A stretch of DNA of 64,000 bases from Octopus sinensis (taxonomy: Eukaryota). Every line of letters begins with the position of its first letter. The first letter of the stretch is position 1. The DNA lies in the NCBI RefSeq assembly GCF_006345805.1, contig NC_043009.1:69130001-69194000 (forward strand), in the 5' to 3' direction. This document shows, in pieces, positions 2,870 to 64,000 of this stretch. The notes beneath the pieces are model-generated. The model saw nothing but the letters and a program-made list of their open reading frames with translations, made no database searches and was not told where the DNA came from. Both the position numbers and the translations under genes were made by a program.

Positions 2870-3050
2870 CTGTGGTGGTGCCAGGTAGATATGGCACCCA
2901 ATATACACTCTGTGAAGTGGTTGACGTTAGGAAGAAGGGCATCCAGCCATAGAAACCCTGCCAAAGCACAATGCCGACCTGCAGGATCCTGTCAAACCAC
3001 CCAATCCATGCCAACATGGAACATGGATGTTGATGATGATAATGATACTT
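2870..3050 (+). mobile_element. RTE-type 3' tail fragment ending in (GAT)n
   Basis: aggaagggcatccagc...ccatgccaacatgg...gatgatgat matches the 3' end of the RTE at 30690-32730. Confidence 0.7.
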
Positions 3051-3072
3051 GCATAACACAGTAGCTCACACA

Positions 3073-3103
<31 letters not shown>

Positions 3104-7400: not shown

Positions 7401-7667
7401 GATTTTCTCCACAAAGAGAATGCAGTGACTTGCAGCACATAAAACAAACAGTTTGGTAGAATTTAATGGAATTAAAATAATCTCTCATTATGTCTAATCA
7501 GAGTAGAAGAAACTAAACTATTCCACAATATTAGACTATGGTGCACCAGTATGGCCATAACCATGTTGTAGAATTTGACTAAAAGAACTTGGAAAATTGG
7601 TCTGTTGATTTTTTTTCAGAATCTTATTCCACTTTATATGGCTACAGATCAAACTAGAACCAACTAA
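4465..7667 (+). other. Candidate spliced transcript, unidentified. Exons 4465-4485, 5148-5408, 7144-7177, 7620-7667; one in-frame TGA at 5320-5322
   Basis: Strong acceptors and donors with compatible phases (2,2,0). Reads KCHSVNR/GVEIRTVKPASLVQKVNKIPESQMSQESLSIEDSLVILIIASKFNKDFRKYLSDKLK*TGLVNKVLDWQGFGTEFKPTADTLLCVFG/LVDEVDILRKQ/NLIPLYMATDQTRTN*. It is followed by ~2.7 kb of repeat-poor AT-rich sequence with AATAAA (e.g. 10358). No family recognised. Confidence 0.35.
6740..6955 (+). mobile_element. SINE family B copy
   Basis: Same head and body as the copies at 1190-1850. Confidence 0.8.
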
Positions 7668-7971
7668 CCATTCCACAAACTTGGTAACAAACAGGGTGGC
7701 CATAGCCATGTGGTAGGCACTGACTAAAGTGTCAGAGAACTTCATCTCTCACTGATTTTCAAAATTCATTGTAGTTTGATAAGCTTAGGAAGGAGCTTTA
7801 CCATTATATTTGCATAACCTTTAACTCACAGCAATCTCTTGACAATCATCTTGGTTTTTTGGGGGATTGATAGGATTAGTAGACCACAAGAGAAAATACC
7901 TTGGAGTATTTGCTTACCAACTTTTACATTCTGCTTAGCTTTGCTTTTTTCTTCCTTCTGGGGTCGATTTA

Positions 7972-8035
7972 GTGGTGGGGGTGGGGGTGGGGGTGGGGGT
8001 GGGGGGGGGGTGGGGGGGGGGTGGGGGTGGGGGTG
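7972..8035 (+). repeat. (GGGGGT)n G-tract with G-quadruplex potential
   Basis: About ten runs of four or more G. Confidence 0.85.
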
Positions 8036-10399
8036 ATATAGTGACCAAACCCTTTCGGGGTGGTGCCTCAGCATGTTTGTAGTAGTCCAGTAACTCAACT
8101 AAAAATGAAAAAAAAAAAAAATCAAAAAAAAGAATACATGCATGATCAATGAATAATTTCCTGAATTTTTCCAGAAAGTGAGGAATCAAAAATCCAAAGA
8201 ATATCAAGTAACTGGTTTCTGTTGAATGTTTGTGTGACGTGCAGTCTTTTACAAACTTTATATTTCTATAAGTCTAACTTCAAAGAAACTAAATTAGAAA
8301 ATTTATTTTACAATATTTTCCAAATGAAAATGTAGTTTATATCTTTCTTTTTTGATATCTTCGTGAATGTCTGGGATTTAAAGAATGGTAATATCTATAA
8401 TCTCAAACATTTCTCCCAGTAACTGATGTTAACTTCTATGAGACAAATTCTATTGATGTTGTCTCTTTATCAAAGAAAATGGAACCATTTTTACGAGGTA
8501 CAAAAAGAACGAGTGTTATTATTTAAAATTCTGTTCAAAAAAATTTTTAATGAAAAAAACAAACTTCTGAATCTCAAAACATGAAGAAAAATATGGATGT
8601 ATTCTTAAAGAGATTGTCCTTTTTGTCTTTATTGCACAAAAACTGTTAGGCTGATGGATCGTTGTGATCCCTTTGTAAGGGTCAATCTATGAATTCTGTA
8701 AAGGAGAATCTCTTTGAATGTATTCCTTCTGATGACATCTCTAATACTAATCTTAAGATATGTCATACCTTGTGATGATCTTTCTTTTCCATTTCTTTCT
8801 TAATAGTACAGTCTCTAATGAAATGTTAAAAAGTTTCATTGCACTTCTACAACCTGGTATTTGTGTCAGAGACGAAACGGTTTGACACTTCATAATAGAC
8901 AGTACTATTAAGAAATAAATGAAAAGCAAATATAACAGTTTTATTTTTTTGTGTGTTCTTAAATGGCCAAAATGACTCCTCCATGATATAAAGATTTCAG
9001 TTTCAACCCATGGTCTCAGATCAAGTCACTTGCCAAATAAGTACAACTTTAAAAAATCATAATTTGTGATCTTCACAAACTTTATTGCATTTGCTTTCGC
9101 TATTTTCTGCATCTTCATGTTAAGATAATGATGAAAGAACATATATATATTCTTTGGTTAAGAATGATATTTTTTATTTTATATTCCTTTCATTAAAGCA
9201 TCGTTAAATTAGAACTTTTATTTGTCCAAAATCTATGATTGCTTTTCTAGTGAGTTTTGTTGTTCAAAAAGCAGATATTTGTCTGCAACATTTATCTTTA
9301 TTTATTTTTCCTCGTAGATTGCATCAATCTGCATATTTTCTTGCATTTCCCATTATTTAATTATTTCTAATGTTTCTCAAACAATCTTCTCAAAGGAGAC
9401 CAAATTACATATAAATTATGTTAAACTGTGCTCTCCCCCCCCCTACCCCACAGTAATTGAAAGTTTTTTAATGGGACTGACCCCTTCAATTATTGTTTAT
9501 CAGCTCATTATCCCATACTTATGTTATCAGTCATTTTGGTGCCGGCAACTGCGGGGTTCCAATAGAAGAATAACTTTTGTTTATTTACAATTTTTTTCTT
9601 TTTTTTTAAAGTTTTCCCTACCGATGATCTCAAATGGAAAGAAATTATTATTATTGCCAATTAAATTATAATCAGTAGAAATTAATTGGGTGTAAATAAA
9701 TTATTTCTCAATTCTTAAATTTTTTTCTGACAGTTGAACTTTATCTCTTCTTAGACTGAACAATGTTATTCCAACTTATAAAGCACAGTATTTTGGTTTC
9801 TCCCAGTCTTGGCATTACCTTGATTCTGTGTCAATTTACTGTCATCCCATACTGTTCAATTCCAACAGATATGTTCCATTATTTTCTTTGCAAGTACTAA
9901 AAGTACATAAGCCAAAGATTATTATATATAAATATATGTAAATATATATACTATATACATATATATTTTTTCTTCCTCCTTATAATATTTCCTTATACTG
10001 TTGAAATTTACCATTCTTGTTAACAAATATTTTTTAAACTTCCACAAATAGTTCTTTATACACTGATTGGAGAAGATGTTTTTTTCTTTATGTTTTTGTT
10101 TTTTTGTTCTTGTAAAGTTAATCCAATTATTTCATGGGTTTCACAAAAAATTTAACAATTCTTGAAATTGTTTCATTAGAATCTCACTGAGTCATAGAAT
10201 TTTTCTTAATTCATGTTTTGCCCTATTTTTCTTCTTTTAAGAATCATTGTTAATTCTGTGGAATTATATTTTCTATTAATTCTGAAATTCCTGTTCTCTT
10301 AGTTTATTTATTTATTTGTGACTGGAAGCTGTCGTCTTTCAAATTTGCTATTCTTTTAATAAAGTTTTAATTTAGTGCAAATTTCATTTGTGTTTTCAT

Positions 10400-10990
10400 T
10401 TTGTCATCATTGTCATCGTCATCATTTAACGCCTGTTTTCCAAGCTGGCATGGGTTGGACGGCTTGACAGGAAGTAACAAGGTTAGGGGTCACACCAGGG
10501 TCCATAGTCTGTTTTGGTTTGATTTCTATGGCTGGATTCTCTTCCTAATGCCAACCACTTTACAGAGTGGCACTGGGTGCCCTCTATGTGGCACCATCAC
10601 TAGTGCTTTTTGCATGGCCCCAACACCCACACTAACACTTTTTATGTGGCACCTTGGTTTTAGGATCTTAATTCTGTTATGGTGGATGGGTCTTCTTGAG
10701 TACAGCATCCCCTTCATAAGGCTCGGCTTTTTGAGATCAGCCTTCAATACTGTGTCCCCTGTTTTCCTTAATCTCCCTCTTCCACAACTTACCTCCTCTC
10801 TAAGGGATCATCATGCAACTGCCATCGGCCATCCACATCGCATGACCAAACCAGTGCAGCCTCTTCCTCTCTTGCCCCCTAATCATAATTCCTCTTCTCT
10901 CTCACACATGCACACTAGCATTGCACATCCTGCAGAGCTTATCAGCTTCTTTCTTCGCGTGTTCTTCGCATCCAGAGCCCACGTCTCACC
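10400..10990 (-). mobile_element. RTE LINE 3' fragment (decayed)
   Basis: Starts with the (CAT)n/tttaacg..ttcc..gcatgggttggac tail. The body resembles the RTE C-terminal region on the minus strand. Confidence 0.65.
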
Positions 10991-11039
10991 ACCATTCATT
11001 ATTTGTTTACAAAAATATTCATTCAATGGAAAACTTATC

Positions 11040-11560
11040 ATCTGTAACATAATACAGACATGGAAACACACACACACACACACACAATGGGCTTCTCTCA
11101 GTTTCCATTTACCAAATCTACTCATATGACTTTGGTCAACCTAGGGTTATAGCAGATAACACTTCCCCAAGGTGTCATACAATGGGACTGAACCTGAATC
11201 CATATGGTTAGCAATTGGACTTCTTAAACACATGGCCATGCCTGTGTGAATATCAGTGTCAGCTCCACACACAGGCAGGGTTGTGTGGTTAAGGGGTTTA
11301 CTTTCTAACCACATGGTCTCAGGTTCAATCCCTCTGTATGGCACTCTTGGCAAATTTCTTCCACAATTGCCCTAGGTTCCCCAAAACTGAGAGAGAATTG
11401 TGATAGGCAAACTGAAAGAGACTCTTCGTGTGGGTGTGTGCATGTACGTGTTTGTGTATGTATTTGCATTTGCCCTTCACAGGGGTCTTGAGCATCCACT
11501 GGTGTTGCTGTTGTCACTTCTTCTGTCAACAAATCATCCACATGGCTTTACATTTTCAAA
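11040..11560. mobile_element. Two head-to-head SINE family A fragments
   Basis: Diverged tRNA-like heads (gtgtggttaag...ggttcaatccc) in opposite orientations. Confidence 0.6.
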
Positions 11561-11822
11561 GATGTGTTAAATAAAAGATTCCTTATTTGAAAAACAGTTA
11601 AAGACTAGCAGGAGGAAGACCATCTAACTGTAACATGATACCTGAATAATATATCCATCTAACTCATGCTTACATGAAAAGGAGACATAAAAGGAACAAA
11701 CAAATAGTGGATTTCAACTTGGTTTTGAATAAACATATTTTACCTCCAATTACAGATTTTGTGAATCACAGGTTGTCATGAATACATAAATCAATATGAT
11801 GAGACCAAAACCCCACCTTCTC

Positions 11823-12038
11823 TGAGGGGGTGCTGAAAAGTTCCTAGCTTTAAGGGTCTCATGAAAGGCCTGGTTGGAGGTCCAGCCTTCTGAGTTCTTT
11901 TACAGGGATCAGAAAATCAAGGACTGCTACAACAAGTGAGTGAATCTGAGAGGGGAAGTGGTTGAATAAAATCCTAATTACCTGATCCTCCTGTATTTTC
12001 TTTTACCCCCAAAGCCAGGGTCTTTTCAGCGCCTCCTT
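11823..12038. mobile_element. Mariner-type MITE
   Basis: Imperfect terminal inverted repeats gagggggtgctgaaaagttcctagct ... agccagggtcttttcagcgcctcct. Confidence 0.55.
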
Positions 12039-12906
12039 GCAGACAGTGATGGCATTTAAATGGGGGAGGATGTGGGTGACTGGAGGACTGCAGTTGCTTC
12101 TCTTTATACTTTTTGTGTCCTCACAAAATATAGAAAATATGGAAACGGTAGTCTTTTACATATCTCAATAAAAGCGATGAAAGGGTTACCATCTGTTTGT
12201 GGTTCCAAAAGTCTCAAAACTTGGCTTGTGCTTAAAAAAGTAAGGTAGGAGTACAAAAAGTACCTGCACATCAAATTTGAAATCTAGCAACAAATGCTTC
12301 TTTGACATGAGAAGGTTAGGGTTCAACTGGAGGTTCAGGCACCCACGAGTATGGTTATATATCTATTGATTCAATGGTGTTTAATTTTGCTTATTTTTCT
12401 CCTATCTTCCACTGTTACCCCCTCAACTAACACCTTTCTCAACTCCCTCTTCCTTTCCCCTCCCACCATTCAGTGTCGTCTTCCCTGTTACAGTAACAAT
12501 AGACGATTATAGTCCTTTGTGCCCACCAGCCGGGACCATGGAAGTTCCACAGGCTTCCCTAGTATACTTAATGAGTGGATTTTCATTCCTTTGTACATTT
12601 ACCTGTGCGTTTGTAGGTGTGTCTGTTCATATGTATGTGTGTTCATACATATATATATATGTAGGTATGCATATATATATATATATATCATCATCATCAT
12701 CGTTTAACGTCCGTTTTCCATGCTAGTATGGGTTGGACGGTTCAAGGTAGCCATTTGTAAATAATGAATTTCTTTTTGTTTTCATTTTAAATCAACATAT
12801 TATTAACTTTGAATTATGGTATTTATTACGTTTTAGTGGATAATAAATTGGTTTTTAATCTTTTTAATCTTTTTCATAGCTAACTCTATTATTCTTAGGA
12901 GTTAGT

Positions 12907-13095
12907 AGATTTTTGTTTCATTAACCACAAACCCCTTCATGTAGATGGCTCTGCTCGATCTGTAGAAAAGGCATAGGTGGAAACTCTATAAGGTGTACCC
13001 AGTGTAAGCCTTATAGAGTTTCCACCTATGCCTTTTCTACAGATCGAGCAGAGCCATTTACATGAAGGGGTTTGTGGTTAATGAAACAAAAATCT
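12907..13095. repeat. Fold-back palindrome, 87-bp arms, 15-nt loop
   Basis: 12907-12993 versus 13009-13095, one mismatch seen. Confidence 0.9.
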
Positions 13096-13132
13096 CTATT
13101 ATTCTTAGGAGTTAGTAGATTTTTGTTTCATT

Positions 13133-13980
13133 GATGGAACCTGTGGAAGTGGTAGACCCAGGAAGACTAGGGATGAGGTGGTGAAGCACAGCCTTTGAAC
13201 ATTAGGCCTCACCAAGGCAATGACTAGTGATTGAGACCTTTGGAAATATGCTGTGCGTGAGAAGACCCGGCAAGACAAGTGAGACCATAACCTTGTGGCC
13301 TATGCCAGTGGTGTAACCAGCCCACTTGTACGTACCTTTCCTTTGGACACAAAACTCTGCTTGCAAAGACCTGTTGAGGTAAGTGAAATCGAAATCAAAA
13401 TTGAGTTCGAAATTGAACCTAATTTGGCTGGCACCCATGCCAACCTTCCTTCATTGGACACTAAACTCTGCTTGTGAAGACCTGTTGAGACAAACGAAAT
13501 CGAATTTGAACCAAATTCGATGACTGGCACCTGTGCCAATGGAACGCTAATAGCTCCATCCAAGTGGGATCACTGCCAGAGCAGCTGTCTACCTTCCATG
13601 CAGATGGCACGTAAAAAGCACCATTTTAGCATGTTTGTTACCGGTGTCACCTTACTGGCACAGTGCTGGTGGCACATGAACAAAACATTCGAGCAAGGTC
13701 ATTGCCAGTGCTGCTGGACTGACTCCTGTGAAGGTAACATGTATAAAACACTATTTGAGTATAGCCATTGCCAGTACCGCCTGACTGGCCCTCATGCCGG
13801 TGGCATGTAAAAGCACCCACTACACTCTTGGAGTGGTTGGTATTAGGAAGGGCATCCAGCTGTAGAAACTCTGCCAGATCAGATTGGAGCCTGGTGCAGC
13901 CGTCTGGTTCGCCAGTCCTCAGTCAAATTGTCCAACCCATGCTAGCATGAAAAGCGGACGTTAAATGATGATGATGATGA
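13133..13980 (+). mobile_element. RTE LINE 3' end (same family as 30690-32730)
   Basis: ggaacctgtgga...agacccaggaagac...gtggtgaagcac through the (GAT)n tail. Confidence 0.8.
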
Positions 13981-15077
13981 TAGATATCTTTCTTGTTTTG
14001 AATGGTCTGATGTTCCTTATATCATAACTTAATTGTTTGTTCCTGTCTGGGCTATTAAAGGTCTTTATTTAGTGAATCTTGCAAGCATGAAGTGGATTCG
14101 ATCCACTATAGCCAAATTTAAATTAGCAGTTCAACAGAACTTTTCTCATGGTGGAAAAATGATTTTTTTCAATGACAGCAGTTTTACATATGCCAGATGC
14201 CTTTAGCTAGGCCAAAATAATGTCTTCACCACTTGACCCTTATAACCTCTTCTACTTCACCAAAAGCTAGAATAGAGATATCACAGTACCACCAATGAAG
14301 CCCATTGTTCTCAAAGATATGCCTATCCTTCTGGATAGTTATAAAAGCAAGAACCCCAAGCAAAAATCTTTGGTCACTTGGTAATAACTGAGTGAGTTGG
14401 CTCGTGACAACTCAATCAGTAAGGAAACAGATTGCTAGAATCATGATCACAAGCAAAGCAACTACTAAAGACAATGGTCAGAGAGAGAAATGAAATTTAC
14501 TGTCAGCAACTTTGAGACCCAACTTCCCACGACCCTACAACTTTCACTTGTTCTAATTCTCTTCTCTTACAACATCATTCTATTGCTGTCTGTGGATTAC
14601 CGCTAACAATTTGTGTACGTCAAACTATGCAAGGAAAATCTACATCTATCTTTACTTTACATGCTTTTGGATTTCATCACCTGCCCGTCGAGGCGAGGTA
14701 TATACAAATGTAACAGTAAAAATAAATATTTCCTTAAAACTGCATGCATTGTTCATCTCTCGCATCTTACACCATGCTTTTACAATTTAATTTCAACCAA
14801 TACAAAAAATAATCTTAACCGTTACATATATATATATTGTTGGTCAAACCTATTCGTTCTAATAATGAATTCCTGAAGAAAAGCCTAATTTTGATTTCAA
14901 AAGGATTATTTTTTTTATGTTTTATTTTTGGAATTAATGAGGCTTGGAAACAATTTGTAGAATCTTTATTGGCTTTGTACCAACTTTTTTTGTCCTTTCC
15001 TTATACTTTTTTTATTGCTTATACAAATACTGAATATATACATTATTTACATTTGACATATATATATATATATATAT

Positions 15078-15533
15078 TGGTGAATTGAAGAAATGGAGCT
15101 GAATGCAGATTGAACAGAAATCGTTTTATTTCATTCTACACGTGTTTCGAAAGGCACAAATTACCAAAATCCGATTGAATAATGGGACCATATTGTGTCT
15201 TTCTCTTCAGGAAGAAAAAAGGAAATCCGTTGGAAAAACAAAAACAGAACAGAGGCAGAGCAAAAACAAATCGAACTGTGCTCCTAAGAGCCCATGGTGA
15301 GCCCATGGTTTCGCCATGGGCTCTTAGGAGCACAGTTCGATTTGTTTTTTGCTCTGCCTCTGTTCTGTTTTTGTTTTTCCAACGGATTTCCTTTTTTCTT
15401 CCTGAAGAGAAAGACACAATATGGTCCCATTATTCAATCGGATTTTGGTAATTTGTGCCTTTCGAAACACGTGTAGAATGAATAAAACGATTTCTGTTCA
15501 ATCTGCATTCAGCTCCATTTCTTCAATTCACCA
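15078..15533. repeat. Fold-back palindrome, ~220-bp arms, 16-nt loop
   Basis: 15078-15297 versus 15314-15533, one indel seen. The ORF track shows mirrored ORFs. Confidence 0.95.
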
Positions 15534-15688
15534 TAATGTTTTAATTTCAATTATCCGCACCAACGCACGGTTGCAACGCCAGATGGTTGTACCTCCAACC
15601 GTGCTGTTCACTGCTGTGATTTTGCTACTAAGGTATCGGTTAAACTTTTGATTAATCTACTACAAGATTATTCATCTTTCTATTTCAC

Positions 15689-15726
<38 letters not shown>

Positions 15727-15820
15727 AATAATGAGGGAGATAAATTAATATTAATTTTAATACCAATTTAAAACCAGTAGTCTAGCATACAAAAAATCTG
15801 AGAAATCAGAGAAAATTCTA

Positions 15821-16153
15821 ATATATGTGTATATTGGCAGGGCTTACTGCTAGGGAGTCGGCCGTATGCTAGAAATAGACCATCAATGATCAAAACTACA
15901 AGGAAATTCTCTAGGGGAAAAATACAGCGAACACCAGAACCAACTTTGGCGGGCATGACAGATGAAAATTTATATAAAAAAATTTAATTCTGTTTTTTAT
16001 ATAAATTTTCATCTGTCATGCCTGCCAAAGTTGGTTCTGGTGTTCGCTGTATTTTTCCCCTAGAGAATTTCCTTGTAGTTTTGATCATTGATGGTCTATT
16101 TCTAGCATACGGCCGACTCCCTAGCAGTAAGCCCTGCCAATATATACATATAT
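15821..16153. repeat. Fold-back palindrome, ~160-bp arms, 11-nt loop
   Basis: 15821-15981 versus 15993-16153, about two mismatches seen. Confidence 0.9.
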
Positions 16154-16204
16154 ATATATATATATATACATACACACATATATATATATGTACGTGTGTA
16201 GGTA

Positions 16205-16490
16205 TACAAGCACCCATGCCACTCGAAACATTGCGCCCAACCCATTGCCCAGTTGCTGTAGGCTTGCCAAAGCCTGCTCAATGTCTCTGTAGCAGACTTC
16301 CCAAGTTTTAACACAGAATTTCATATTGGCTCTTTGTTCCTGTCCATGACAAAACTGCAGGCTACAACATACACGCATGATCACAAAGACACAAATTTCA
16401 CAAGTTGCAAAGTAAACACAACAATGTCACTCAGCACACTGCCTCATGTTCTGCCATCTGTTGGCATGCTTTTTGTTAACACTTCAAATA
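16205..16490 (-). mobile_element. Mariner 5' fragment (family of 59821-60736)
   Basis: Minus-strand translation GQEQRANMKFCV..KSATETLSRLWQAYS closely matches the copy at 60 kb. Confidence 0.75.
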
Positions 16491-16539
16491 TACTCAAAAA
16501 TTAAGTAAAATCCCTGTTTCCCACCTGTAAAGGCTTGTC

Positions 16540-17035
<496 letters not shown>

Positions 17036-18924
17036 TATGAGGAAAGCCTTTTCAAAAGTTGTGTAGAAAGAGTTTTATATTCATTACAGTGAAGAGAACT
17101 TTTATTCTAGTCACTGTTGTGAACTGATGAAATGCTTAAAAGGAAATAAAACCGTTTGAATATAAAGGTCAGCAGACACGATCAAGTGAGAGAAAAGTTT
17201 AGAGAGGAAAAGAAAGAAAGAAAGAATGAAAGAATAAAAAATTCAAATTGTTAATTGAATATAGGTCAGTATTTGCTCAATTAAAAAAAAGTGACACTTT
17301 GCTATAATCTGAATAACAAGTTAAAGGAACTGATTTTTAACAATGTTTTTTTTTTTTTTTTAATTCCTGTAAGTGTAAATGTGTCAATTGGAATTTATGT
17401 GAAAAAATTTTTAATTTTCTCAAAGAGAATGTGTGTGCTTGCAAATTTCTTGAAAAATAGTTGTTTGTATATTTGTGAGTAGGAAGAAAAACCAACTCCA
17501 AGATTGCTTTTATATCATTACAATGGAAATTTAAAAAGAGTAAATACACAGAAATCAAATATTACAAAGAAACAATAAACATAGAAATAGAAAGAAGTAC
17601 ATATGTTACAACCCACCCTGCAACCAACAAGCAAAACACTTTATAGCAAAAAAAAAAGAGAAAAAAACAGATTTTAAAGGTTACTGAAACATTTTCCACC
17701 TGAGCAAAAATACGACAAACTACAAAATAAAATCATGAGTTTTCCTTTGTCCCACCAATAACTTCTCTCAAATGACAGCAAATTCCAACCAAGTAAAACT
17801 GGAAATAAAAAAGAATGAGCCAAAATCCTATTAACAATGACACAAATCATTGTGATATTCGAAAAACACTTGCCCTCAATGAGAAGAATGTTTTACTAAA
17901 GACCAGCTTAAGTGACCTCTCTCCACTTTTTCTTTTGTCTTCCTCTCCAGCTACTAAAATGGCATTACTAAAAGTAGGTAGTATACTTGTACATTAGCAA
18001 GCCAGGACAAAAAAATCCAAGACAAAAAAATCACTCAACCTCCTTCTAAAAGACTATGAGACCTACTTAAACAGATTGGATGATGTAGTGGGGCTGTTTT
18101 GGTAAGGCCTGGTCCCAGAGGTAAATACTATTTTTCTAGACCCATCAACACACTCAGTGATGCTAACAATAATTATGTTTTATAAATTAAGCAGTTTCAA
18201 AAAATTAATTAGTCTGTAGAGAATTTGCAGTCTGTAATGTTTGGAGGCCTTCTTCCTATAGTGAGATCAGCGCTGTAGATTTGTGGCCATTTATACCCTG
18301 AACAAGAGTGGGAAGACCAAACTTCTTCAGACGTCTGAAGACATTCCTTGGAACATCTCACTTATTTGTGTTAGTAGGTGATCAGAATAACATTTTGTAT
18401 GCATGCAGAATTCTTATGGGTATAGCTGATAAAGAAAAGGGTCATAAAAGCCTTGCACACCTGATCAGGCACTTCTAACTGCCTCACAGGTTTTGTCTTT
18501 ATGTTCCACATACACCATTGTAGTCTTGGATTAATTCAAGCAGATCATCCGAATTATATAGAATTATTGTTAGGTTAGCAGGCAGGATTAATGTATATTA
18601 TTCACGGTTTCTGATGGTTGTTTACATGGACCAGAAAATTGTGATGTGTACAGTCGACTTTGAATAGCCCAAATAGACAGGGGCTGGAAGCTGAATGCAT
18701 CTCTTCTGATGCAGAAAGATTTCAAAGGCTGGACCAGCAAACTTGCTAAGTAAGAGTTGAAGGGAACCCTCATCAACAACAGCTGGTCTTAAAAGGGAAC
18801 AATTTGGATAGAATCGATTAGCTTCAGTAAAGAGATAGATATTGAGAATGGTAAGATACAGAAGGAATTAAACCATTCAGGAGAGACTCAAAGAAGAAGC
18901 ATCGTGAATGACTTACTTTTTACT

Positions 18925-23860: not shown

Positions 23861-24574
23861 ACAAAAACAGCAGAGAACAAGTTAATGGGGATAAATCTAC
23901 CATAGAGGAAAGAGGGTCCCTTTAGCCTTGGTTGGCAACCCCTTAGAGATGGTGTCTTGATAAAAAAAACATTGGTGGTTGTGACATATCACCAATATGG
24001 CCTTCATTATGAGTGTAATGCCAAATAAAATTTATCCCAACTTCATTCCAAGTGAAAGTCTCTTGCACAGCAAGTGCTCCACTGGACAGCAGGGTGGATC
24101 TAGTCATTACCCAAATACTACCACAAACGTGAGGAGAAAATGGACTTATAATGACATTAAAACTGTAACGAAATTGCTAGAGAGATTGAAATTGAAACTC
24201 GCAGAAAAGTGCAATCCTGTATTCTGCAAGAATCTTCAAGAAGTTTCTTGAGATTTCAGCAGACTTGTCACCAAACATAAAAAAAATGTACTTGCTAACT
24301 AAATTAGCATGCACTTGCATAATAATAATAATAGGGCTACAGCAAATATTCTGCTCAATATCACAGATATGGTTGTCAGTTGCTTGACCTTAACCGGTTG
24401 ACGATGTCCCTTAGTGGCCGACAATATGTACATTTCTGATCTCAAGCAGGAGTAGTGGGGGAGCATCATAGCCATGTGTTGAGGGGAATCCATTAAGGTT
24501 GAATAATTAACCTCTGAAGGCATGGTGTTTTGCTCATCATCCGTGGCCCTCAGGGATGCTTAACCTGAAGAAAA

Positions 24575-30689: not shown

Positions 30690-32730
30690 CCTTATAACAG
30701 GGTTGTCATCAAGGCATACCAAACCGTTTCTTCCTCATCATGGTTCTTTCTCAGCAGTGCCACCATAATGAAGGTTATGGAGAGGGTCATTAGGCAGAGA
30801 GTTAGTTTAGATGAGATGCAGTTTGGGTTCGCTCCAGGGAAAAGCACCACTGTTGCTATATTTCTGATAAGACAGTTGCAGGAGAAATACCTAGCCAAAG
30901 ATTAATCTCTGTACTTGGCTTTCATTGACATGGAGAAAGCCTTTGACAGGGTCCCCCGATCCCTTATCTGGTGGGCAATGAGGAAACTAGGGATACATGA
31001 ATGGTTAGTGAGAGCTGTGCAAGTCACGTACAGAGACGCTGTCAATAAGGTGAGGGTTGGCAATGAGTACAGTGAAGAATTCCAGGTAGAGGTAGGGGTC
31101 CACCAAGGTTCAGTCCTCAGCCCCCTCCTATTTATCATAGTCCTCCAGGCAATAACAGAGGAATTCAAGACAGGATGCCCCTGGGAGCTCCTCTATGCTG
31201 ATAACCTTGCTCTAATTGCTGAGTCACTATCAGAACTGGAGGAGAAGTTTCAAGTGTGGAAACAAGGATTAGAATCGAAGGGCCTTAAAATCAACCTAGC
31301 TAAAACCAAAGTCCTAATAAGTAAGGCAGGTAAATCCCAAATCCATTCAGGTAGATGGCCCTGCTCGATCTGTAGTAGAGGCGTAGGTAGAAGCTCTATA
31401 AGATGTACCCAGTGTAAGCTATGGACACATAAGAGGTGCAGTAATATCAAAGGAAGGCTAACTGGGAAGATAGTTTTGTATGTGACAGATGCTCGGGAGT
31501 GATAAACACTGAAAATGTGCAGAGACCAACTTCTGCCACATTCCAGGGAGAAAAACTAGACGTAGTTGATAGCTTGGGTTATCTAGGTGACCAAGTCAGT
31601 AGCGAAGGAAGGTGTGCTGAAAGTGTAGCTGCTAGAATTAGAATAGCTTGGGCAAAGTTCAGAGAGCTCTTACCTCTGCTGGTGACAAAGGGCCTCTCAC
31701 TCAGAGTAAAAGGTAGACTGTATGATGCATGTGTACGAACAGCCATGCTACATGGCTGTGAAACATGGGCTGTGAATGCTGAGGATATGTGTAAGCACAC
31801 AAGGAATGAAGCCAGTATGATCTGATGGATGTATAATGTCAGTGTGCATACACGACAGAGTGTAAGTACCTTGAGAGAAAAGTTGGACCTAAGAAGCATC
31901 AGTTGTGGTGTGCAAGAGAGACGTTTGCACTGGTATGGTCATGTGGTGAGAATGGATGAGGATAGCTGTGTGAAAAAGTGCCAATCCTAGTGGTTGAGGG
32001 AACCTGTGGACGACGTAGACCCAGGAAGACCTGGGACGAAGTGGTGAAGCACGACCTTCGAACATTAGGCCTCACCGAGGCAATGACTAGTGACCGAGAC
32101 CTTTGGAAATATGCTGTACTTGAGAAGACCCAGCAAGCCAAGTGAGACCATAACCCGTGGCCTATGCCAGGGGTGTAACCAACCCACTTATGCATACCTT
32201 TCCTTCATTGGACACTAAACTCTGCTTGCGAAGACCTGTTGAGACAAATGAAATTGAAATTAAATCAAATTCGATGACTGGCTCCTGTGCCAGTGGAGCA
32301 CTAAGAGCACCATCCGAGTGTGATCGTTGCCAGAGCAGCTTCCATGCCGGTGGCATGTAAAAAGCACCATTCGAGTGTGATCGTTACCATTGTTGCCTTA
32401 CAGGCACTTGTGCCGGTGGCATGTGAAAAGACATTCGAGCGAGGTCATTGCCAGTGCTACTGGACAGGCTCCTGTGCAGGTGGCACATAAAAAACACCAT
32501 TGGAGTGTGGCCATTGCCGCCAGCACCGCCTTACTGGCCCTCGTGCCAGTGGCACATAAAAGCACCCACAACACTCTCAGAGTGGCTGGTGTTAGGAAGG
32601 GCATCCAGCTGTAGAAACTCTGCCAGATCAGACTGAAGCCTGGTGCAGCCATCAGGTTCGCCAGTCCTCAGTCACATCGTCCAACCCATGCTAGCATGGA
32701 AAGTGGATGTTAAACGATGATGATGATGAG
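30690..32730 (+). mobile_element. 5'-truncated RTE LINE (RT region with stops and frameshifts, 3'UTR with ~50-bp subrepeats, (GAT)n tail)
   Basis: AFIDMEKAFDRVP, GVHQGSVLSPLLF, LLYADNL (YADD degenerate), a Cys-rich WPCSIC..CTQC..WTHKRC insert, and YLGDQVS. Confidence 0.92.
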
Positions 32731-41131: not shown

Positions 41132-41601
41132 TTATTATTATTATTATTGTTATTATTATTATTATTATTGTTATTACTATTATTATTATTATTGCTGTTG
41201 TTGTTGTTGTTATTATAATTAGTCCAAAGCTAGCATATGCAAGTTTAATTAGCAGCCAAATTATCTTCTTCGGGTCTCTTCAAAATGGAAGAATCTTTTT
41301 TTTAGGACTCTTGCAGAATATAGGATTGCACTTCTATTCTGCAGGTCAACAATGCAAGTCTCAATTCCCGTATCCTTCAGTCTCTTAAGTAGCCAAGTGT
41401 TGTGCCAAGTGCACTGATTACCAATCATCATCATCATTATCATCGTAAATGTCATCACTACCATCATCGTCATCATTACCATCATCATCATCACTACCAT
41501 CATCGTCATCACTACCGTCATCATCAGCAAGAGCTGCAGTAGCACTATTCTACACACCACCAACATTACCGTTTCTTCTTCTTTCATCAACAGACATCAA
41601 A

Positions 41602-55840
<14,239 letters not shown>

Positions 55841-57097
55841 CATTCGTCTTTTACAATTAAGAGAATTTCTCCTGATATGTCCTGAAGTGTTTGTTCTACT
55901 CCTTGTTGTGAATGTGAAGACAGATTTGGTCTATTCCTGTTCTTTCCTAAACAGAGATATATAATTTTACTCTTTGCCCTCTCATCTGGCAAAGAAATAC
56001 CATTCAGTTTTACAAAATTCTCCCAACTTCATTTTTTTTCCTTCTTTGAGCTCTGATTGGTTTAATAATTCTATTTGTTCAATTTATGTTAACACAATTT
56101 TTACCTTTGCACATTTCTTATAGGAATGGATAATAGTGTTTTACTTAGTATAAGAGTTGTCACAGCTGTTTTTAACTTTATCTTAAAAATTACTTCTTTG
56201 AGTGTTTGGGATATTTTTATTTTTGTCTGTTAATTTTTCATTAAATTGTTTGTTTTTTTACATTTAGAAAAAATGTATATTTGATAACCCTTTTAAGCAG
56301 ATGTGAAACAGTATATTTGGTAACCATTTTAAATGTGGAAAATTTAATGAGTGTCATCTGAGAAGAAATTCCTTTCTTCTTCTCTTCCTTCAATGAGGCT
56401 TTGAAAAGGGTCAATGCCTTTCCTCTTTCCGTTGAGTGATTAAAGAAAAAAAGCTAATGTCCATCTTTTAGGCAACATACACTGAATTAGTTTCTGTTGC
56501 TTTCTTCCGAATCCCTAGAAGGTTCCATTACAGAATTGCAAATGGAACAAATCCTTCATCCTTTATATAGCACCCTGCCCCCCCCCCCATCTACCACCTG
56601 TGGCCATGAACTCCACTTCCAAAACGTACCAATTTATATCTCAACATAAATATAGGGATTTGTAGCTGTGATCTTGCAGCAAGTGAACGACTGTGCTCAG
56701 TGTCTGTGAATACAGAGATTAGAGTTTGTTTTTAAAATATGTGTAGAACTAAGAATGTCCATGTGTCTCAGTGAGTGACCATAACTATGACAATTCTGGT
56801 TTAATAAAAATGATATGTAGAATTCCAGTGTTTGCCAAAAGTAATCTACTTTCTTCTGATTCTTTTTCATATTTTTGGCCGATAACTGGTCGCTTGAGAA
56901 TTTCAAACAAGAAGGCAAGTATAACAATAATTCCTGAGAATAATTATTTTCTCCATTCAACCTCTCTCTTTTTTCACCCTTAATTTCTTACACTCTCTAT
57001 TTATCTTTGTATGTGTCTGTCTCTCTTTATCTGTATATCCTTGTATAAGTCTGTTTCTACCTCTCTCTCTCCCTCCCTCTCTCTCTCTCTCTTTCTC

Positions 57098-57129
<32 letters not shown>

Positions 57130-57744
57130 CGAGAAGGAAGAGGTATTTTCATTGTACTTGTGGCTATGGCAAAAGAATGTGTCTAGTGGACGCATCTGAA
57201 AAGATTAGAGACAAACACTTCACTTTCCTCTCTGGTCAATCTCTCATCAGCTTCCTCAAGTATCACTTGAAGAGGAAGGTGAGAGTAGAGAGGCAAGTTT
57301 TGTCTAGTGAATGTTTAAAAAAAAGATGGGTGAATGTAGCAAGGATGGCACGTATGAATGACGAAGCCACCTTGAGCATAATCCTGTGAACTAGAAAAAA
57401 AAAGCAAGGTAAAAAAGAGAGTTACCTACTTATAAATGTGTTATGTGACATTATTGCCTGAGGTTACCATGGTCTTTTCATAGGTTTTTCTTTACACAAA
57501 TAAACCTCCCCACTTTTGGGAACTTTTTGTATTATTTCGACCTTTTGTATATCTCAAACGATTTCGATCCCTTTTGATCGTTATCCCTATTTTTTATTTA
57601 TTTTTATTTTTGTTTGTTTTCGCCCCCCCCCCCCCCTTCCAAGAAAAGCTCTACATTGTATTTGTCCGCTCTAAGTTCAACCCTTGTGTGGCCAATAAAG
57701 AAAGTTATCTATCTATCTATCTATATCTATCTATCTATTATCTA

Positions 57745-57803
<59 letters not shown>

Positions 57804-59079
57804 TTGGGTCGTCCGGAAAGTTTGTACCGATTTTTAAAGGAAAGAAAAAGGTCAATAAATACTTGGCATTACATTTTTAATCAACCAAATATGAACCATT
57901 TTGTTGCACAATCTCCATCTTTCCTTCAGCTTGAAAATATCCTCTTCCCAGAATTGAGGTAGTTTCAAGTCAAAGAATTCATCAAGGTATCTTTTTACGT
58001 CATCCAAGGAATTGAAATTTTTACCATTAAGTCTTCTGTAGAGACCTGAATAAGTGGAAATCCGAAGGAGCAATATCCGATGAATATGGAAGGTGGAGTA
58101 ACATCCCAGGCGAGCTGCAGCAATTTTTGTCTGGTTCCCAAAGAAACGTGCAGTCTTGCATTATCATGTTGGAAAACAACACCCTTTCTGTTGGCCAATT
58201 CTGGATGTTTCTCTCAAATTGCTGCTTTTAACTCGTCCAGTTGTGTGCAGTATTTCTCAGAATTAATTGCCTGGTTACTTGGGAAAAGCTCAAAGCACAG
58301 AATTCCTTTCCAATCCCACCAGACACAAAGCAAGACTTTTTTAGGGTAAGACCCGCTTTTGGGGTGGCTAAGGGTGGCTCGTGTTGCTTATTCCAGGATC
58401 ACTTTCTCTGAACATTTCGGTAGATAATCCATTTCTCATCACCTGTCACAATTTGCTTTAAAAAAAGGCACCTTTTCATTCCGTTTATAAAGTGAATCAC
58501 AGATGGAAATGTGATCCAAAAGGTTCTTCTCACTCAAATCATGTGGTACCCAAACATTGTAGCGATTTGTGTACCCAAGCTTTACCAGGTGCTCATGAAT
58601 GACGAAGTTTGATAGGTTGAGGCTAACTGCCAATTCTCGGGTTGTGCAATGTGGGTTATTCTCAATTAATGATTTGATTTGGTCATCATCTGTAGTCAAG
58701 GGTCTGCCTGATCACTCTTTATCAATAAGGCTACAATCTCCAGCTCGGAACCTTGCGAACCGATTCCGTACAGTTCTTTCAGATAAAGAAACATCACCGT
58801 AAACTGCGCATATTTCTTTGGTTGCTTGTGAGGCATTTTTCCTTTTACGGAAAAAGAAAAGCATCAAGTGCCGAAAATGAACTTTCTTATCTTCCATTGT
58901 AAAGGGTTACAGAATCAACACAGGTTATAGGAACATAAACCTTCTTCCATGAAAAGATAGCTTAAACTGTGCTCTAAATGGAGGTGTAGTCAAATCCTAT
59001 TTTATGAACTCAATCATGTTCTAAAATAAGTCGAAAGGTAAGCTACTATAAATCGGCATGAACTTTCCGGACAGCCCAA
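57804..59079 (-). mobile_element. Near full-length mariner (DD34D family) transposon, transposase disrupted, inserted in (TA)n
   Basis: TIRs ttgggtcgtccggaaagtttgtaccgattt / aaatcggcatgaactttccggacagcccaa. ORF pieces MEDKKVHFRH..., WVPHDL, VVFQHDNARLH and GKNFNSLDDVK. Confidence 0.92.
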
Positions 59080-59116
59080 TATATATATATATATATATAT
59101 ATAATAATTATTATAT

Positions 59117-59148
<32 letters not shown>

Positions 59149-59820
59149 ATAATTATTATATACGTTTTTATTATTATATTTTGCACTTTATTTAATCATT
59201 GACATTTTATTGTTATTTTAATTTTAACATTTCTATTATATGTAATTTTCTAGATAGTGTAATTTAATTGTTCGTTTTGAATTGATTAAAAGTGGGATTT
59301 TTCCTAATTTTATATATATATATATATATATCTTAATCTACCTCCTCATATTCACAAAATCTTCTACACTCAATTATTTACATTATTTACATTTAGTCAA
59401 TTAATTCTAGTAACTTCTATGAAAAGCAGGTCAGTCTTTCTTTAGACTTTCTATTTTTGTAGACATAGAACTTCTCCATAGAGGCAACCTTTCAGACAAA
59501 TTCCATGATGCTGTACTCCAATGTGGCGCTCAAGTTGTGAAAGGAAACTTGGTCTACTTTTTTTCTTTTATGTGTTAGCCATTTTCAAATAACTTGATTT
59601 GAATAACTGTTTGACGCCTGTTGAAAATGATACAAAATAATAAAGACAATAACGCCATAAAAAGAGAAGAAACTCACAAATAAATACTAATCTTTCTGCT
59701 TTTCTCCAATTTTAGAATATTTACTGCAAATGATGAAGGTGGAATAGAAAATAAGGAAATAACATGACAAAAAAAAAAGACTCCCATTTAGAAAAACAAG
59801 TTTAAAAAATTCTGTTGTTA

Positions 59821-60736
59821 TGAGGTAATATCAAAAAGTTCCGGGACTAGTTGTGTAGCATGCCAACAGATGGCAGCACATAGTTGCATGCTGCACAGTG
59901 AGAGCTAGCAATGACCTTCATGAGGCAGTATGAGGCCAAATGACATTGCTGTGTTTACTTTGCAACTTGTGGAATTTGTGTTTTGTGATCATGCGTGTAT
60001 GTTGTAGCCTCCAATTTTGTCATGGACAGGAACAAAGAGCCAATATGAGATTCTGTGCTAAACTTGAGAAGTCTGCTACAGAGACATTGAGCAGGCTTTG
60101 GCAAGCCTACAGTGATGAAGCAATGGGTTGTATGCAATGTTTTGAGAGGCACGAGTGCTTTAAAAGCAGACGAATGTCCCTGGAAGATGATGAGCGACCT
60201 GGAAGACATACCACAAGCATAACCCCTGGAAATGTGGTATTGTGCATCAAGAATCCGTCCCCTAGGGCCAGACCATCAGTTGAGGGATCTCCTGTGATAT
60301 TTTGAAGCATTTGAGATTGGAGACTTGGTGAAAGCGACTGGAGCCTGAAGAATTGGATTCATCATGATGACAATGCATTCTGTGACCGAGCTCTCCTCAC
60401 TTGTGAGTTTCTTGCTGAAGACTAAATGGTATCACTTCACAACCCAACCTATTCGCCAGATTCACCACCTGTCGACTTCCATCTCTTCCTCAAGATGAAA
60501 ATGCTGCTCAAAGGTCACCGTTTTAACACCATTGTCAACATCCGGAGCAAATTGCAGGTCTTTGGCTCACTTTCAGAAAACAACTTCCAGGAGAGATTCC
60601 AAAAGTGGTAGGAATGCTGCAACCTGTGTATTGCTGCACAAGGTAACTATTTCGAAGGAGAGAGTGTTAAAACTTAGGTAGATTAATTATTTTTCATTAA
60701 ACATAACTAATCTGGGAACCTTTTGGTACCACCTCA
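59821..60736 (+). mobile_element. Internally deleted mariner
   Basis: TA-flanked tgaggt...acctca ends. EQRANMRFCAKL..SLEDDERPGR and PTYSPDSPPVDFHLF. Confidence 0.85.
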
Positions 60737-61451
60737 TATACTTAAAGATGTCTACATTTTAAGCAGCTAATATATAAAGCTTTAATAATCCTTTCTGCTA
60801 TAGGCATAAGGTCTGAAATGTTGGAGAAGGGGACTAATTAATTACATTGAACAAAGTATCCAACTGATATTGAAAGGATGAAATTCAAAGCCAACCTCAA
60901 TGGAATTTGAACTCAGGGTGTAAAAATAGATGAAATACCACTAAGCATTTAGTCCAGCATGCCAACAGCTCTACCAGCTTACCACTTCAGATAAAGCTTT
61001 TATAATATAAGTAGTTTATATTTGACATTTATTTATGACTCATATATATTTAGCTGTTCATTTTCCCAGTCCTATCAGACACAGAAGGAGTATGGTATAA
61101 AAGCACCGTACTCTGGTTTGATGCAAAAACAGATCAGTCTACAATGCTACATCACAGCTTGGGTGTAATATCTACAATATATATGTCCCAACAAGAAGAA
61201 ATTGTTAAAAATTAGCATTACAGAAGTTAAAATGGAAGGACTTCTAAGCTGCAAGACGAAACTATGAAGCAACTGGTGGCTTATTTCCTGCAGTTGTTAT
61301 ACGCAACCACAACAATCTATATGACATCATAAACCATACCAGTTATGATGTTACATCAAAACAGGTATGGTTTACCTGCCATGCATGTCGTTCAATCACT
61401 GATCAAATTACAACATTAATCTTTGATGAGTTTATTTATCTGCCATTACAG

Positions 61452-63469
61452 ATGCCAACTGTAGCCTGGAAGGTACTTGGTATAATGATCTCGGTTCTAC
61501 AATGGTCATAAAACAAAATGAGGATGGTTTACTGGAAGGTAAGAAGAATATATTTTCAAAATATCAAAATGTAGATTATTTTAATAGTCATTCAAATTTG
61601 TATCAGGCCATTTTATTTTTTTAAATTATGTTATTTTAAAAGGATCCATTTATTGTAGATTTTGTTTCAATATATTTTGTGTTGGGTAAACACATCCTGA
61701 GTCAAATCTAGCTTTGATTCTTCATGTTAAATTCTGGGACAACATTCTCATAAGTTGGTATATCAGGCATCACAGATTGAGGTTCTACATATTTCTTCAG
61801 CCTTCTGAATGCAGTCACCAAACTCTCTTCAAATAAACTTCCTAATCAAATTAAGAAAAGAAGATAAAAGTAAAAAAAAAAAAAATCAAGGAAGGGGTCA
61901 CATACTTTGGATTCCAAAAGAATAATATAATTTGATTGGCTACAGGCCTAACTTGAGCATTTCATTGACCACAGGCAGAACTAACCATGCAAAATATATG
62001 TATTTTATTTCTAAAAGCATACTTTGAATTGATGCTAAGCCGCCACTTCCCTCTGCAAGGGTTACTGGTGTACAATCTGTGTGCTGAAACAATCTTTATT
62101 AATGAACGTAATTAAGCATTAAGGTCTGCAGACCATTAAGGATAACTAATTTGATCATTTTATTTCATTAAAGGTCAATTCCGCACTGCTGTTGAACGTG
62201 TCAATGGTTCATCTGGGGGTTTTAAAGCCAATGTTCATGGTGCTATCAGCCCTTATTCTGTCTTCAGTTTTGGTATTGTTTGGAATGAAGGAACTTCAAT
62301 TTCCTCCTTTGTTGGTGAGTAGCAATAACATCATGTATATTTCATTCATCACTTATCTTACAGAAAGCCAAATCGCTTCCATCCATTATTTCTTTGGCTG
62401 AAACTTCATAAACAGAGACTCTAAGTTTCATGTTTTACTAATCCCCAAGGAACCAAATACGAGGTTGAGTCAAAAAGTGATGCCATTTTGTTTAGGACAG
62501 GTATAATTACCAATACAGGAACATGTATCATACACCAAAATGAAGCTGGTCCTTTGTAGATCACATCCCTACAGTCACCGTTTCTCTGAATAGCAATGTT
62601 CCACCTTCAAATGAGAGCATGTATCCCTGCCCCATAAAATTCTGTTGACTGTTCTTTGAGTCACTTCTTCACTACAGTTTTCACTTCCTTGTCACTGGAA
62701 TAATGTTTGCCTCTCAAACCCTCTTTCATGGCCCCAAAGGGATGATAGTTTGAAGGCACTAACTTTGGTGCATATGGAGGATGTGGTAAAGTTGTCCACC
62801 TGAATGAGGCGATTGTCTCCCTTGTCCTGATGCTTGTGTGTGGTCGAGCATTGTCGTGCAGTAGGAGGATATTGTCGACTGGCAACTTGGGTCTTACTTG
62901 TCGGATTCTTGCTCTGAGCCTTGTCGGCGTCTCAATGTAGGCATCAGAGTTTATTGTTTTTCCTTTTGGCAAGAAACCAACTCCCCTATCGTAAGGTCAT
63001 GAGTTTGATTACCAGCACCATGTTGTCTCCTTTAGCAAAACACTTTATTTCTTGTTGCTGGACTGCACTCAATTAGCAACAAAGAGTATTACCCGTATTT
63101 CAAAGCGTCAGTCTCATCACATTCTGATACACGATGAATCTGCAGGCTGTTCCATTGATCGGAGCAACTGGAAGGCTCAATATTGCTAACTGATGGACTT
63201 TGTTAGTCTTTAAACATGTTTGTTGCTGAAATGTTTTTGAATTTTCTCAAAGTGGAAAAGGCTTTTTGTTGGCAACTTTCAAGCTCATGTCTGAATATAC
63301 AGATATACCCATGCATGTATGTTTTTTTGCTTCTCTTCTCCAGGTCAGTGTATCCCCTCATCAAACAATGCCACCTTCTTGAAAACTCAGTGGACAATGC
63401 TTGTGGGACAGGAGACCTTTGATACCAGCTGGAAAGCTTTTTACAATGGAATGAACAATTTCTACAGAG
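61452..63469 (+). CDS. Avidin-family protein, partial. Exons 61452-61538, 62174-62314, 63344-63469; upstream exon unresolved, continues downstream
   Basis: Three phase-1/phase-1 exons with GT-AG ends give DANCSLEGTWYNDLGSTMVIKQNEDGLLE/GQFRTAVERVNGSSGGFKANVHGAISPYSVFSFGIVWNEGTSISSFV/GQCIPSSNNATFLKTQWTMLVGQETFDTSWKAFYNGMNNFYR/G. This matches the avidin hallmarks CSLxGxWxNxLGS, TAV, FxxxW, FxGQC, LKTxW, WKA and GxNxF. Confidence 0.93.
62460..62975 (-). mobile_element. Mariner 3' fragment inside an avidin intron
   Basis: LLHDNARPH..LPHPPYAPKLVPSNYHPF; terminal ta-cgaggttgagtcaaaaag. Confidence 0.85.
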
Positions 63470-63499
63470 GTGAGATATGTATGATGTTACCTGCAAGGA

Positions 63500-63900
63500 T
63501 GGGTGGATAAATGGACATAGAGATGAGTGGATAGGGGGATGGATTTATGGGTAGGTGAAGGGATTTATGTATGGATCATTAGGTGAATAGATTGGTGAAT
63601 GGATAGACGGATGATGAGGGGATTATTAGGGTGGTGGGATGAGAGAAGAATGAATGCATGGACGCAATAGATTGATGGTTGGGAGTTGTGTGGGTGGGTA
63701 GGATAAATGTGGTTAAAAGTGTAGTTGATTGGATGATTGATTGGTTGGAGTGATGAATGCATTGAATGATGGTTGAATGAATGGACAAGTGGTATGTCGC
63801 CTGGTTAGATCGACAGTTTGACAGATGGTTTATTGAGTGGATGGTTAGATAAGTATCACAAGGATGGATTGGTGGTTAAACACCTGGTTGGTAAGGAGAC
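63500..63900. repeat. Degenerate (TGGA)n-like satellite
   Basis: Repeated gatgg/tgga motifs just after the last avidin donor. Confidence 0.65.
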
Positions 63901-64000
63901 ATGTCGTACGTGAAGCTGTGGCTATGATGTAGAGCCGGGTACTTGTTACAGGAGTTCTCACAGAGTGTATTTGCTGTTAACCATGGTGAAGTAATTCGCA

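Follow-up and report, generated by a model that had tools for sequence, protein, structure and literature searches.

An octopus avidin-family domain as the probable C-terminal barrel of a larger secreted protein

To what kind of protein does an avidin-like coding stretch in an octopus genome belong, and would that protein bind biotin? The question is raised by 64,000 nt of the Octopus sinensis genome (contig NC_043009.1, positions 69,130,001 to 69,194,000; hereafter the window, with positions counted from its first letter), near the end of which an original prediction, made from the letters and their open reading frames (ORFs), had placed a canonical biotin-binding avidin domain of a probable cephalopod. 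By sequence, the avidin feature is real and was correctly spotted; its interpretation was right in part, and its function is something that we infer. We consider it fairly probable that the three exons concerned encode the C-terminal domain of a multi-exon octopod gene spanning at least 41602-63469, whose product would consist of a signal peptide, a barrel without a pocket, a linker and a pocket-complete barrel that binds biotin.

The avidin domain is encoded on the + strand by three exons, each with an AG acceptor and a GT donor and with phase 1 at every junction. Exon 6 (61452-61538, 87 nt; ANCSLEGTWYNDLGSTMVIKQNEDGLLE) encodes avidin strands 1-2 and carries C4, W10, N12 and S16 (chicken avidin numbering throughout). 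Exon 7 (62174-62314, 141 nt; GQFRTAVERVNGSSGGFKANVHGAISPYSVFSFGIVWNEGTSISSFV) encodes strands 3-6 with F33, T35, the L3,4 loop, W70, S75, S77 and F79, and exon 8 (63344-63469, 126 nt; GQCIPSSNNATFLKTQWTMLVGQETFDTSWKAFYNGMNNFYR) encodes strands 7-8 with C83, W97, W110 and N118. Joined, the three exons give a product of 117 aa (ANCSLEGTWYNDLGSTMVIKQNEDGLLEGQFRTAVERVNGSSGGFKANVHGAISPYSVFSFGIVWNEGTSISSFVGQCIPSSNNATFLKTQWTMLVGQETFDTSWKAFYNGMNNFYR), which matches the Pfam Avidin profile PF01382 with 80.4 bits (E 1.7e-22; cut-off 24 bits) over profile positions 1-115 of 116. The match is far above chance, and judged by this profile the avidin-family domain is genuine, as had been claimed. Among solved structures, its sequence comes closest to avidin constructs, zebavidin, AVR2 and AVR4. 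In an AlphaFold2 (AF2) model of the full two-domain protein, of modest confidence (predicted local distance difference test, pLDDT, 58.8), the C-terminal barrel has eight strands in residues 167-276, and its single-domain Foldseek matches are zebavidin, avidin and xenavidin, with template modelling (TM) scores of 0.69-0.77 normalised to the target. A second sequence-detectable avidin domain was not found elsewhere in the 64-kb window. The location given originally, 61452-63469, has these exons right and covers just the last three of at least eight.

The pocket of this barrel is close to that of chicken avidin in one part and different in another. Residues C4, W10, N12, D13, L14, G15, S16, T35, W70, S75, F79, C83, W97, W110 and N118 are identical to those of chicken avidin, Y33 is replaced by F and T77 by S. 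All of the residue states listed in the original prediction, Y33F and T77S included, are borne out by the alignment; the prediction had overlooked F72E and S73G as well as an L3,4 loop resembling that of zebavidin, in which T38/A39/T40 are E/R/V (these three states were read by eye from the structure-match alignment). Nine of the 11 classical contacts (N12, S16, Y33, T35, W70, S75, T77, F79, W97, W110 and N118) are identical, and at the sequence level Y33F and T77S are conservative changes. When the contacts are divided by the part of the ligand they serve, the ring contacts N12/S16/Y33/T35/N118 and the box W70/F79/W97/W110 are identical at eight of nine positions, with F in place of Y33. From the valeric-acid contacts T38/A39/T40/F72/S73/S75 and the sulphur contact T77, S75 alone is retained. 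The word 'canonical' was therefore an overstatement for this pocket, as F72, S73 and the L3,4 loop depart from chicken avidin in a zebavidin-like manner.

Y33F had been read as a special tuning of the protein. However, F occurs at position 33 in 17 of 118 near-full related domains, typically within a GEFRTAVE motif, and the F33 relatives include echinoderm proteins named 'fibropellin-3-like'; among avidin relatives F33 is thus nothing unusual. In avidin itself Y33F is reported to be tolerated without severe loss of affinity (PMC3029397). Zebavidin lacks the F72/S73 contacts and yet binds biotin at ∼nM, its dissociation rate constant for biotin being 6.5e-3 per s versus 5e-8 per s for avidin (PMC3811995).

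The live barrel, as we call the C-terminal one, likely binds biotin with reduced affinity. Binding is expected because the ring-recognition set and the Trp box are kept, the fibropellin-type replacements W70R/W110K are absent and the ratio of nonsynonymous to synonymous substitution rates (dN/dS) of the avidin exons is 0.24-0.32 against three paralogues (∼0.27 against the closest; synonymous divergence, dS, 0.7-1.5). A reduced affinity is expected because of F33, the missing F72/S73 contacts and the zebavidin-type L3,4 loop. That binding would be reduced rather than abolished is a reasonable guess from these residues.

We think it unlikely that both barrels are used in the manner of sea urchin fibropellin, as oligomerisation or structural modules, with the C-terminal barrel binding no biotin in vivo. 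Such a use would fit an avidin domain that sits in a mosaic protein beside a clearly pocketless partner barrel (described below) and that differs from chicken avidin at F33, E72 and G73, as it would fit the 'fibropellin-3-like' annotation of several F33 relatives. Moreover, as fibropellin shows, biotin binding cannot be established by inspection of residues (PMC8033661). Yet the failure of fibropellin to bind has been ascribed to W70R and W110K (PMC8033661), while the window domain keeps W70, W97 and W110 and all ureido hydrogen-bonding residues but one. No epidermal growth factor (EGF) cysteine pattern was found in the six frames of the 64-kb window and no EGF Pfam match on the gene model. 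The conservation of pocket residues among long-diverged paralogues (dN/dS ∼0.3 at the dS values given above) also speaks against such a use.

The live barrel might instead bind something else than free biotin, such as a biotin derivative, some other small carboxylate, a peptide or a protein-bound group. In favour of this, the pocket departs from chicken avidin where the valeric-acid tail is held (L3,4 loop, F72E and S73G), and position 33 lacks the tyrosine hydroxyl. We regard this as quite improbable: nothing has changed in the residues that recognise the bicyclic ring (N12, S16, T35, N118 and the Trp box), and zebavidin, with the same type of loop, binds biotin (PMC3811995). A biotin-binding barrel of reduced affinity is the reading that we carry forward.

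The original prediction implied a stand-alone avidin. Upstream of the avidin exons, however, we located a signal peptide, an N-terminal domain and a linker, which make the avidin domain the C-terminal barrel of a larger, presumably secreted protein. The upstream exons (at ∼42.0, 43.0 and 52.9 kb) were found by tblastn with a protein of Argonauta hians, GAB1601784.1, as the probe. All lie on the + strand. Exon 1 (41602-41668) holds the start codon and the signal peptide (MRLSIAFVLLCLSLCQA/KNISS) and ends in the phase-1 donor CAG/GTAAGA. It was the top candidate in a scan for an ATG, a hydrophobic stretch and a phase-1 donor, and judged by its sequence pattern it would encode a textbook signal peptide. 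Exon 2 (42013-42138; DIGGILEGSWSSEENLLLTFNQRNNSLSATLTISCSRGYNFT), the start of the N-terminal barrel, has phase 1 at both ends and is placed by the A. hians tblastn match and its splice sites; it is collinear with the O. bimaculoides protein A0A0L8HYN0. Exon 3 (43022-43090; GNITNSNTFHLYGAFNTTAIAVT), the middle of the barrel, again with phase 1 at both ends, is placed by A. hians tblastn and the O. bimaculoides protein. Exon 4 (52922-53100; GQLYKTNQNNKILKITLLKYDYANCTNYTPTKISFHEL...YNWYNYL), from A. hians tblastn, holds the end of the barrel and the start of the linker. Its donor, CTA/GTAAGT, is in phase 0, as are the donors at the same position in O. vulgaris and the two A. hians modules; a weak phase-1 donor after 53104 is an alternative. 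A0A0L8HYN0, a gene model of 161 aa from another species with the N-terminus MRLSIAFALLSLSLCQAENNSS, is 89% identical and bears out exons 1-4 together with the junctions between them. From end to end the window model aligns in the same order with each module of GAB1601784.1, at 45% identity in both cases. In all, at least eight exons are spread over 22 kb or more; all eight are open, and seven have canonical AG/GT sites and matching phases. Signal-peptide-like ORFs just 5′ of 61452 were considered as well and excluded by phase or by stop codons.

What, then, is the N-terminal domain? Its ∼110 residues are encoded by exons 2-4 (42013-53100), and no Pfam match was found for it even at E up to 10, either in the window model or in protein P0152. 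An AF2 model of the domain by itself, built from a multiple sequence alignment of four sequences of the N-terminal domain and no avidin sequences, has eight consecutive strands (pLDDT 78, predicted TM score 0.72). The best 50 Foldseek matches of this model in the PDB are all avidin, streptavidin, xenavidin, zebavidin or shwanavidin, the top one being 5hlm_B (TM 0.69/0.71, root mean square deviation 3.2 Å over 106 columns). At the sequence level, profile-profile alignment (hhalign) to avidin reached E 5e-5 over 89 collinear columns when the copy from a cuttlefish, Acanthosepion pharaonis CAE1145982.1, was added, and the avidin hidden Markov model (HMM) matched the cuttlefish N-terminal domain at E 3e-5 and the window copy at E 3e-4. 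The domain retains W10 and a GQ motif; it has other residues in place of N12, S16, Y33, T35, W70 and W97, it has lost the L3,4 loop, and possible equivalents of W110 and N118 fall in a poorly aligned C-terminal part. As modelled, the N-terminal domain is an avidin-fold barrel without a biotin pocket, predicted to be ligand-dead. A reeler/reelin domain was rejected, with no Pfam match at E up to 10 and the best 50 fold matches all of the avidin/streptavidin kind; the UniProt name of A0A0L8HYN0, 'Reelin domain-containing', is supported neither by Pfam nor by the fold search. For the full two-domain model the best Foldseek match is the single-chain dimeric streptavidin 6s50, over 282 columns, and the model hints that the two barrels pack like avidin subunits.

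Between exon 4 and the avidin exons lies a linker micro-exon (56878-56914, + strand; ADNWSLENFKQE), recognised by DNA similarity to the O. vulgaris locus and leading from phase 0 to phase 1. Its donor, AAG/GCAAGT, is of the GC type, and AAG/GCAAGT is the usual strong context of working GC donors. The acceptor may be the non-canonical TG at 56876-56877 or else, 21 nt downstream, the canonical AG at 56897-56898, which would give a 16-nt exon (56899-56914). That AG also restores the frame, as does the weak donor after 53104. An in-frame stop six codons upstream of the micro-exon means that no earlier AG acceptor is usable. Micro-exons homologous to the window stretch 56860-56920 occur in the O. 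vulgaris locus (9990-10045) and in both modules of the A. hians locus (14320-14375 and 23995-24035). At the acceptor position three of the four copies (window, O. vulgaris and A. hians module 1) read TG, and A. hians module 2 reads AG; the TG may be either an octopod-conserved non-canonical 3′ splice site or part of a locus that uses the shorter exon with the internal AG. All four copies are open and have a length of 3n+1, which argues for coding constraint on the micro-exon. A scan of 53107-61451 for a canonical AG...GT micro-exon leading from phase 0 to phase 1 gave nothing convincing. As to frameshifting junctions, a concern raised with the original prediction, exons 6-8 all join in phase 1, but the junction from exon 4 to 61452 hinges on this unusual micro-exon.

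Several points weigh against the gene as we have assembled it, beside the caution about residue inspection given above. The donor of exon 4 is in phase 0 and the acceptor at 61452 in phase 1, so the avidin frame depends on the micro-exon; if it is skipped, the avidin exons are out of frame and a stop is met 19 codons into the avidin exon. The O. bimaculoides model A0A0L8HYN0 runs past the donor of exon 4 into intron sequence and ends there. A word-indexed protein search found no database protein spanning the avidin half of the window gene: the avidin domain as query gave no match and a three-row alignment as query gave only the O. bimaculoides fragment, although this word index overlooks relatives that an exhaustive HMMER search recovers. 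The model of the locus was built entirely from genomic sequence and comparison. For the N-terminal barrel, hhalign to avidin was weak when the cuttlefish copy was left out (P 0.02), and both AF2 models were built on four-sequence alignments; since the pLDDT of the full model is 58.8, the inter-barrel packing in it is unreliable. Finally, the window most likely stops within the gene, leaving its 3′ end outside.

Some of these points could be taken as signs of a decaying or non-productive copy, in which the avidin exons are no longer joined in frame and the locus yields the N-terminal barrel alone or nothing. The GC donor of the micro-exon, the lack of an in-frame AG at the acceptor position of Argonauta module 2, the frameshift on skipping and the termination of the O. 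bimaculoides model after exon 4 would agree with decay, as would introns filled with transposon debris. Eight open exons, seven of them with canonical sites and matching phases, do not agree with it, nor does a dN/dS of ∼0.27 against the closest paralogue; the unusual TG acceptor is common to O. vulgaris and A. hians module 1, the donor context is one usual for functional GC donors, four micro-exons keep the length 3n+1, and the canonical AG 21 nt downstream also restores the frame. We therefore hold decay to be improbable and retain the gene with both barrels joined in frame.

Exon 8 closes with a phase-1 donor, AGAG/GTGAGA, from which it follows that the coding sequence probably extends past position 64000. 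In A. hians (FYR/ESERGF..., into the next barrel pair) and in O. vulgaris (FYK/DSKEE*, into a short exon) splicing continues from the corresponding position. No plausible terminal exon was found within 63470-64000 (531 bases). With the exon 8 donor unused, the frame would reach a stop at 63508-63510.

Is this gene an isolated case? When 1.84 billion representative proteins were searched exhaustively with HMMER, 168 relatives came up. The best of them is A. hians GAB1601784.1 (536 aa, 'uncharacterized protein LOC115218491'), which has two avidin domains, each after ∼130 residues without a domain assignment; the other closest relatives are O. vulgaris CAI9732303.1, O. bimaculoides A0A0L8HYN0 and A. 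pharaonis CAE1145982.1. With two Octopus species, Argonauta and a cuttlefish as the sources of the nearest proteins, the cephalopod origin proposed for this DNA was correct, and the sequences place its source near, though apart from, O. bimaculoides. The dead-live barrel pair is a phase-1-symmetric unit that occurs twice in the 536-aa Argonauta protein and once in the cuttlefish protein, and its presence in octopods and cuttlefish implies that it is older than the octopus-cuttlefish split. These cephalopod proteins (LOC115218491-like) share with the window gene the barrel pair, the exon phases, the micro-exon and the avidin splice points, and their avidin domains are 53-67% identical to that of the window. 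They differ from it in that position 33 is Y in the Argonauta and O. vulgaris copies and F in the window, in the two units of Argonauta and in the O. vulgaris and O. bimaculoides models being fragments; all are uncharacterised entries. By domain order and exon structure the window gene belongs to a coleoid family of dead-live barrel pairs, which is distinct from an invertebrate di-avidin lineage.

In the O. vulgaris locus (OX597826.1:81243571-81272095) two adjacent models (1-9711, 230 aa, and 10001-18525, 105 aa) both match Pfam Avidin, and they look like one multi-barrel gene split by annotation; the 105-aa model omits half of an intact avidin exon (13314-13466). The window showed no collinearity with this locus, just repeats and paralogous exons. 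The di-avidin family is widespread in invertebrates, with members in Owenia, Ridgeia, Actinia, Ptychodera, Argonauta (GAB1601759.1) and Acanthosepion that are labelled uncharacterised, unnamed or hypothetical, and in cephalopods this lineage coexists with the dead-live family.

How might such a protein work? It would be secreted and N-glycosylated, and its C-terminal barrel would hold biotin by hydrogen bonds through N12, S16, T35, N118, S75 and S77 and by a hydrophobic box of W70, F79, W97 and W110, with an affinity probably well under that of chicken avidin. Its dead barrel would probably lie against the live one in the place of a partner subunit, and may thereby fix valency and oligomeric state. 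As a role one may speculate about extracellular sequestration of biotin, for instance in egg or mucosal defence; the antimicrobial sequestration suggested in the original prediction is likewise conjecture. It is possible, and we put it forward only tentatively, that coleoids possess a natural single-chain avidin, in which a dead barrel permanently occupies the partner-subunit place beside a live one; on that view the Argonauta protein, with its two units, would amount to a pseudo-tetramer made of one chain and having exactly two sites. If true, the single-chain coleoid avidin would combine fixed valency with tuned, reversible biotin binding, properties that protein engineers have built by hand.

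The surroundings of the gene contain many repeats. The GC content is 30-46% per 2-kb window (mostly 32-41%), and microsatellites and debris of long interspersed nuclear elements (LINE) and of mariner are present; such features are in keeping with an octopod genome. A (CAT)n-like microsatellite lies at 41430-41530, immediately 5′ of the exon 1 start codon. Remnants of mariner/Mos1-type transposases lie inside introns of the gene, at 59940-60302 (+) and 62664-62972 (−); one matches HTH_48 (E 0.003), and the other, located between exons 7 and 8, matches DDE_3 (E 0.007). At 30915-31499 (+) a reverse transcriptase fragment of LINE type (RVT_1, E 5.6e-20) precedes a cysteine-rich, PHD/C1-like stretch. 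Translated microsatellites account for many of the other long ORFs of the window, and no tRNA genes were found in the window.

The verified eukaryotic avidins of a 2021 survey come from birds, reptiles, amphibians, fish, sea urchin, lancelet and fungi, with no mollusc among them (PMC8033661). In the literature searched, whose coverage was incomplete, we found no paper on cephalopod avidins and no dead-live barrel arrangement. With a secreted octopus protein pairing a dead with a pocket-complete barrel, the avidin family would come to include molluscs, and engineered dual-chain avidins would have a counterpart in nature. As a reagent scaffold, such a protein would supply a biotin binder whose affinity, and possibly valency, is naturally lower; its N-terminal barrel would illustrate reuse of the avidin fold after loss of the ligand.

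Compared with known systems, the window protein resembles the vertebrate avidins (chicken avidin, AVR2, AVR4 and xenavidin) in the PF01382 domain, the eight-strand barrel, the C4-C83 pair and the secreted precursor, as well as in residues N12, S16, T35, W70, S75, F79, W97, W110 and N118. The vertebrate proteins are single-domain, of ∼150 aa, and encoded by four-exon genes (PMC3811995), whereas the window gene spreads eight or more exons over 22 kb or more and adds an N-terminal barrel, Y33F, F72E, S73G and another L3,4 loop. A stand-alone avidin of vertebrate type was rejected, as ∼145 residues and four exons separate the signal peptide from the avidin domain. Zebavidin of zebrafish (4bj8), the second-best solved-structure match (E 2.2e-14), comes nearer: it shares with the window domain a TAVE..G..G type L3,4 loop and the lack of F72/S73 contacts (as read from the alignment and PMC3811995). 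It differs in that Y33 is kept, in being a single-domain homotetramer and in having an L5,6 loop one residue shorter. This likeness suggests for the window barrel an affinity class of ∼nM with fast dissociation.

Sea urchin fibropellin, like the window protein, carries the avidin fold inside a larger secreted invertebrate protein. Its avidin-like domain follows EGF repeats, has W70R and W110K and does not bind biotin (PMC8033661, PMC10336842); because there is no EGF in the window and W70 and W110 are retained, a fibropellin-type protein is rejected. Like the window protein, the di-avidin proteins of invertebrates carry avidin domains in tandem on a single secreted chain; their identity to the window domain is 35-38%. 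Unlike in the window gene, both of their domains are Pfam Avidin-positive with EYRTAVE, and several members have a C-terminal hydrophobic tail. Their linkers are GPRK-rich. The engineered dual- and single-chain avidins and dimeric streptavidin (2c4i, which is also the best PDB sequence match of the avidin domain, and 6s50) have two barrels per chain, as the window protein is predicted to have. The engineered versions are man-made fusions of two active subunits, whereas the octopus protein would be a natural chain in which one of the two barrels is ligand-dead.

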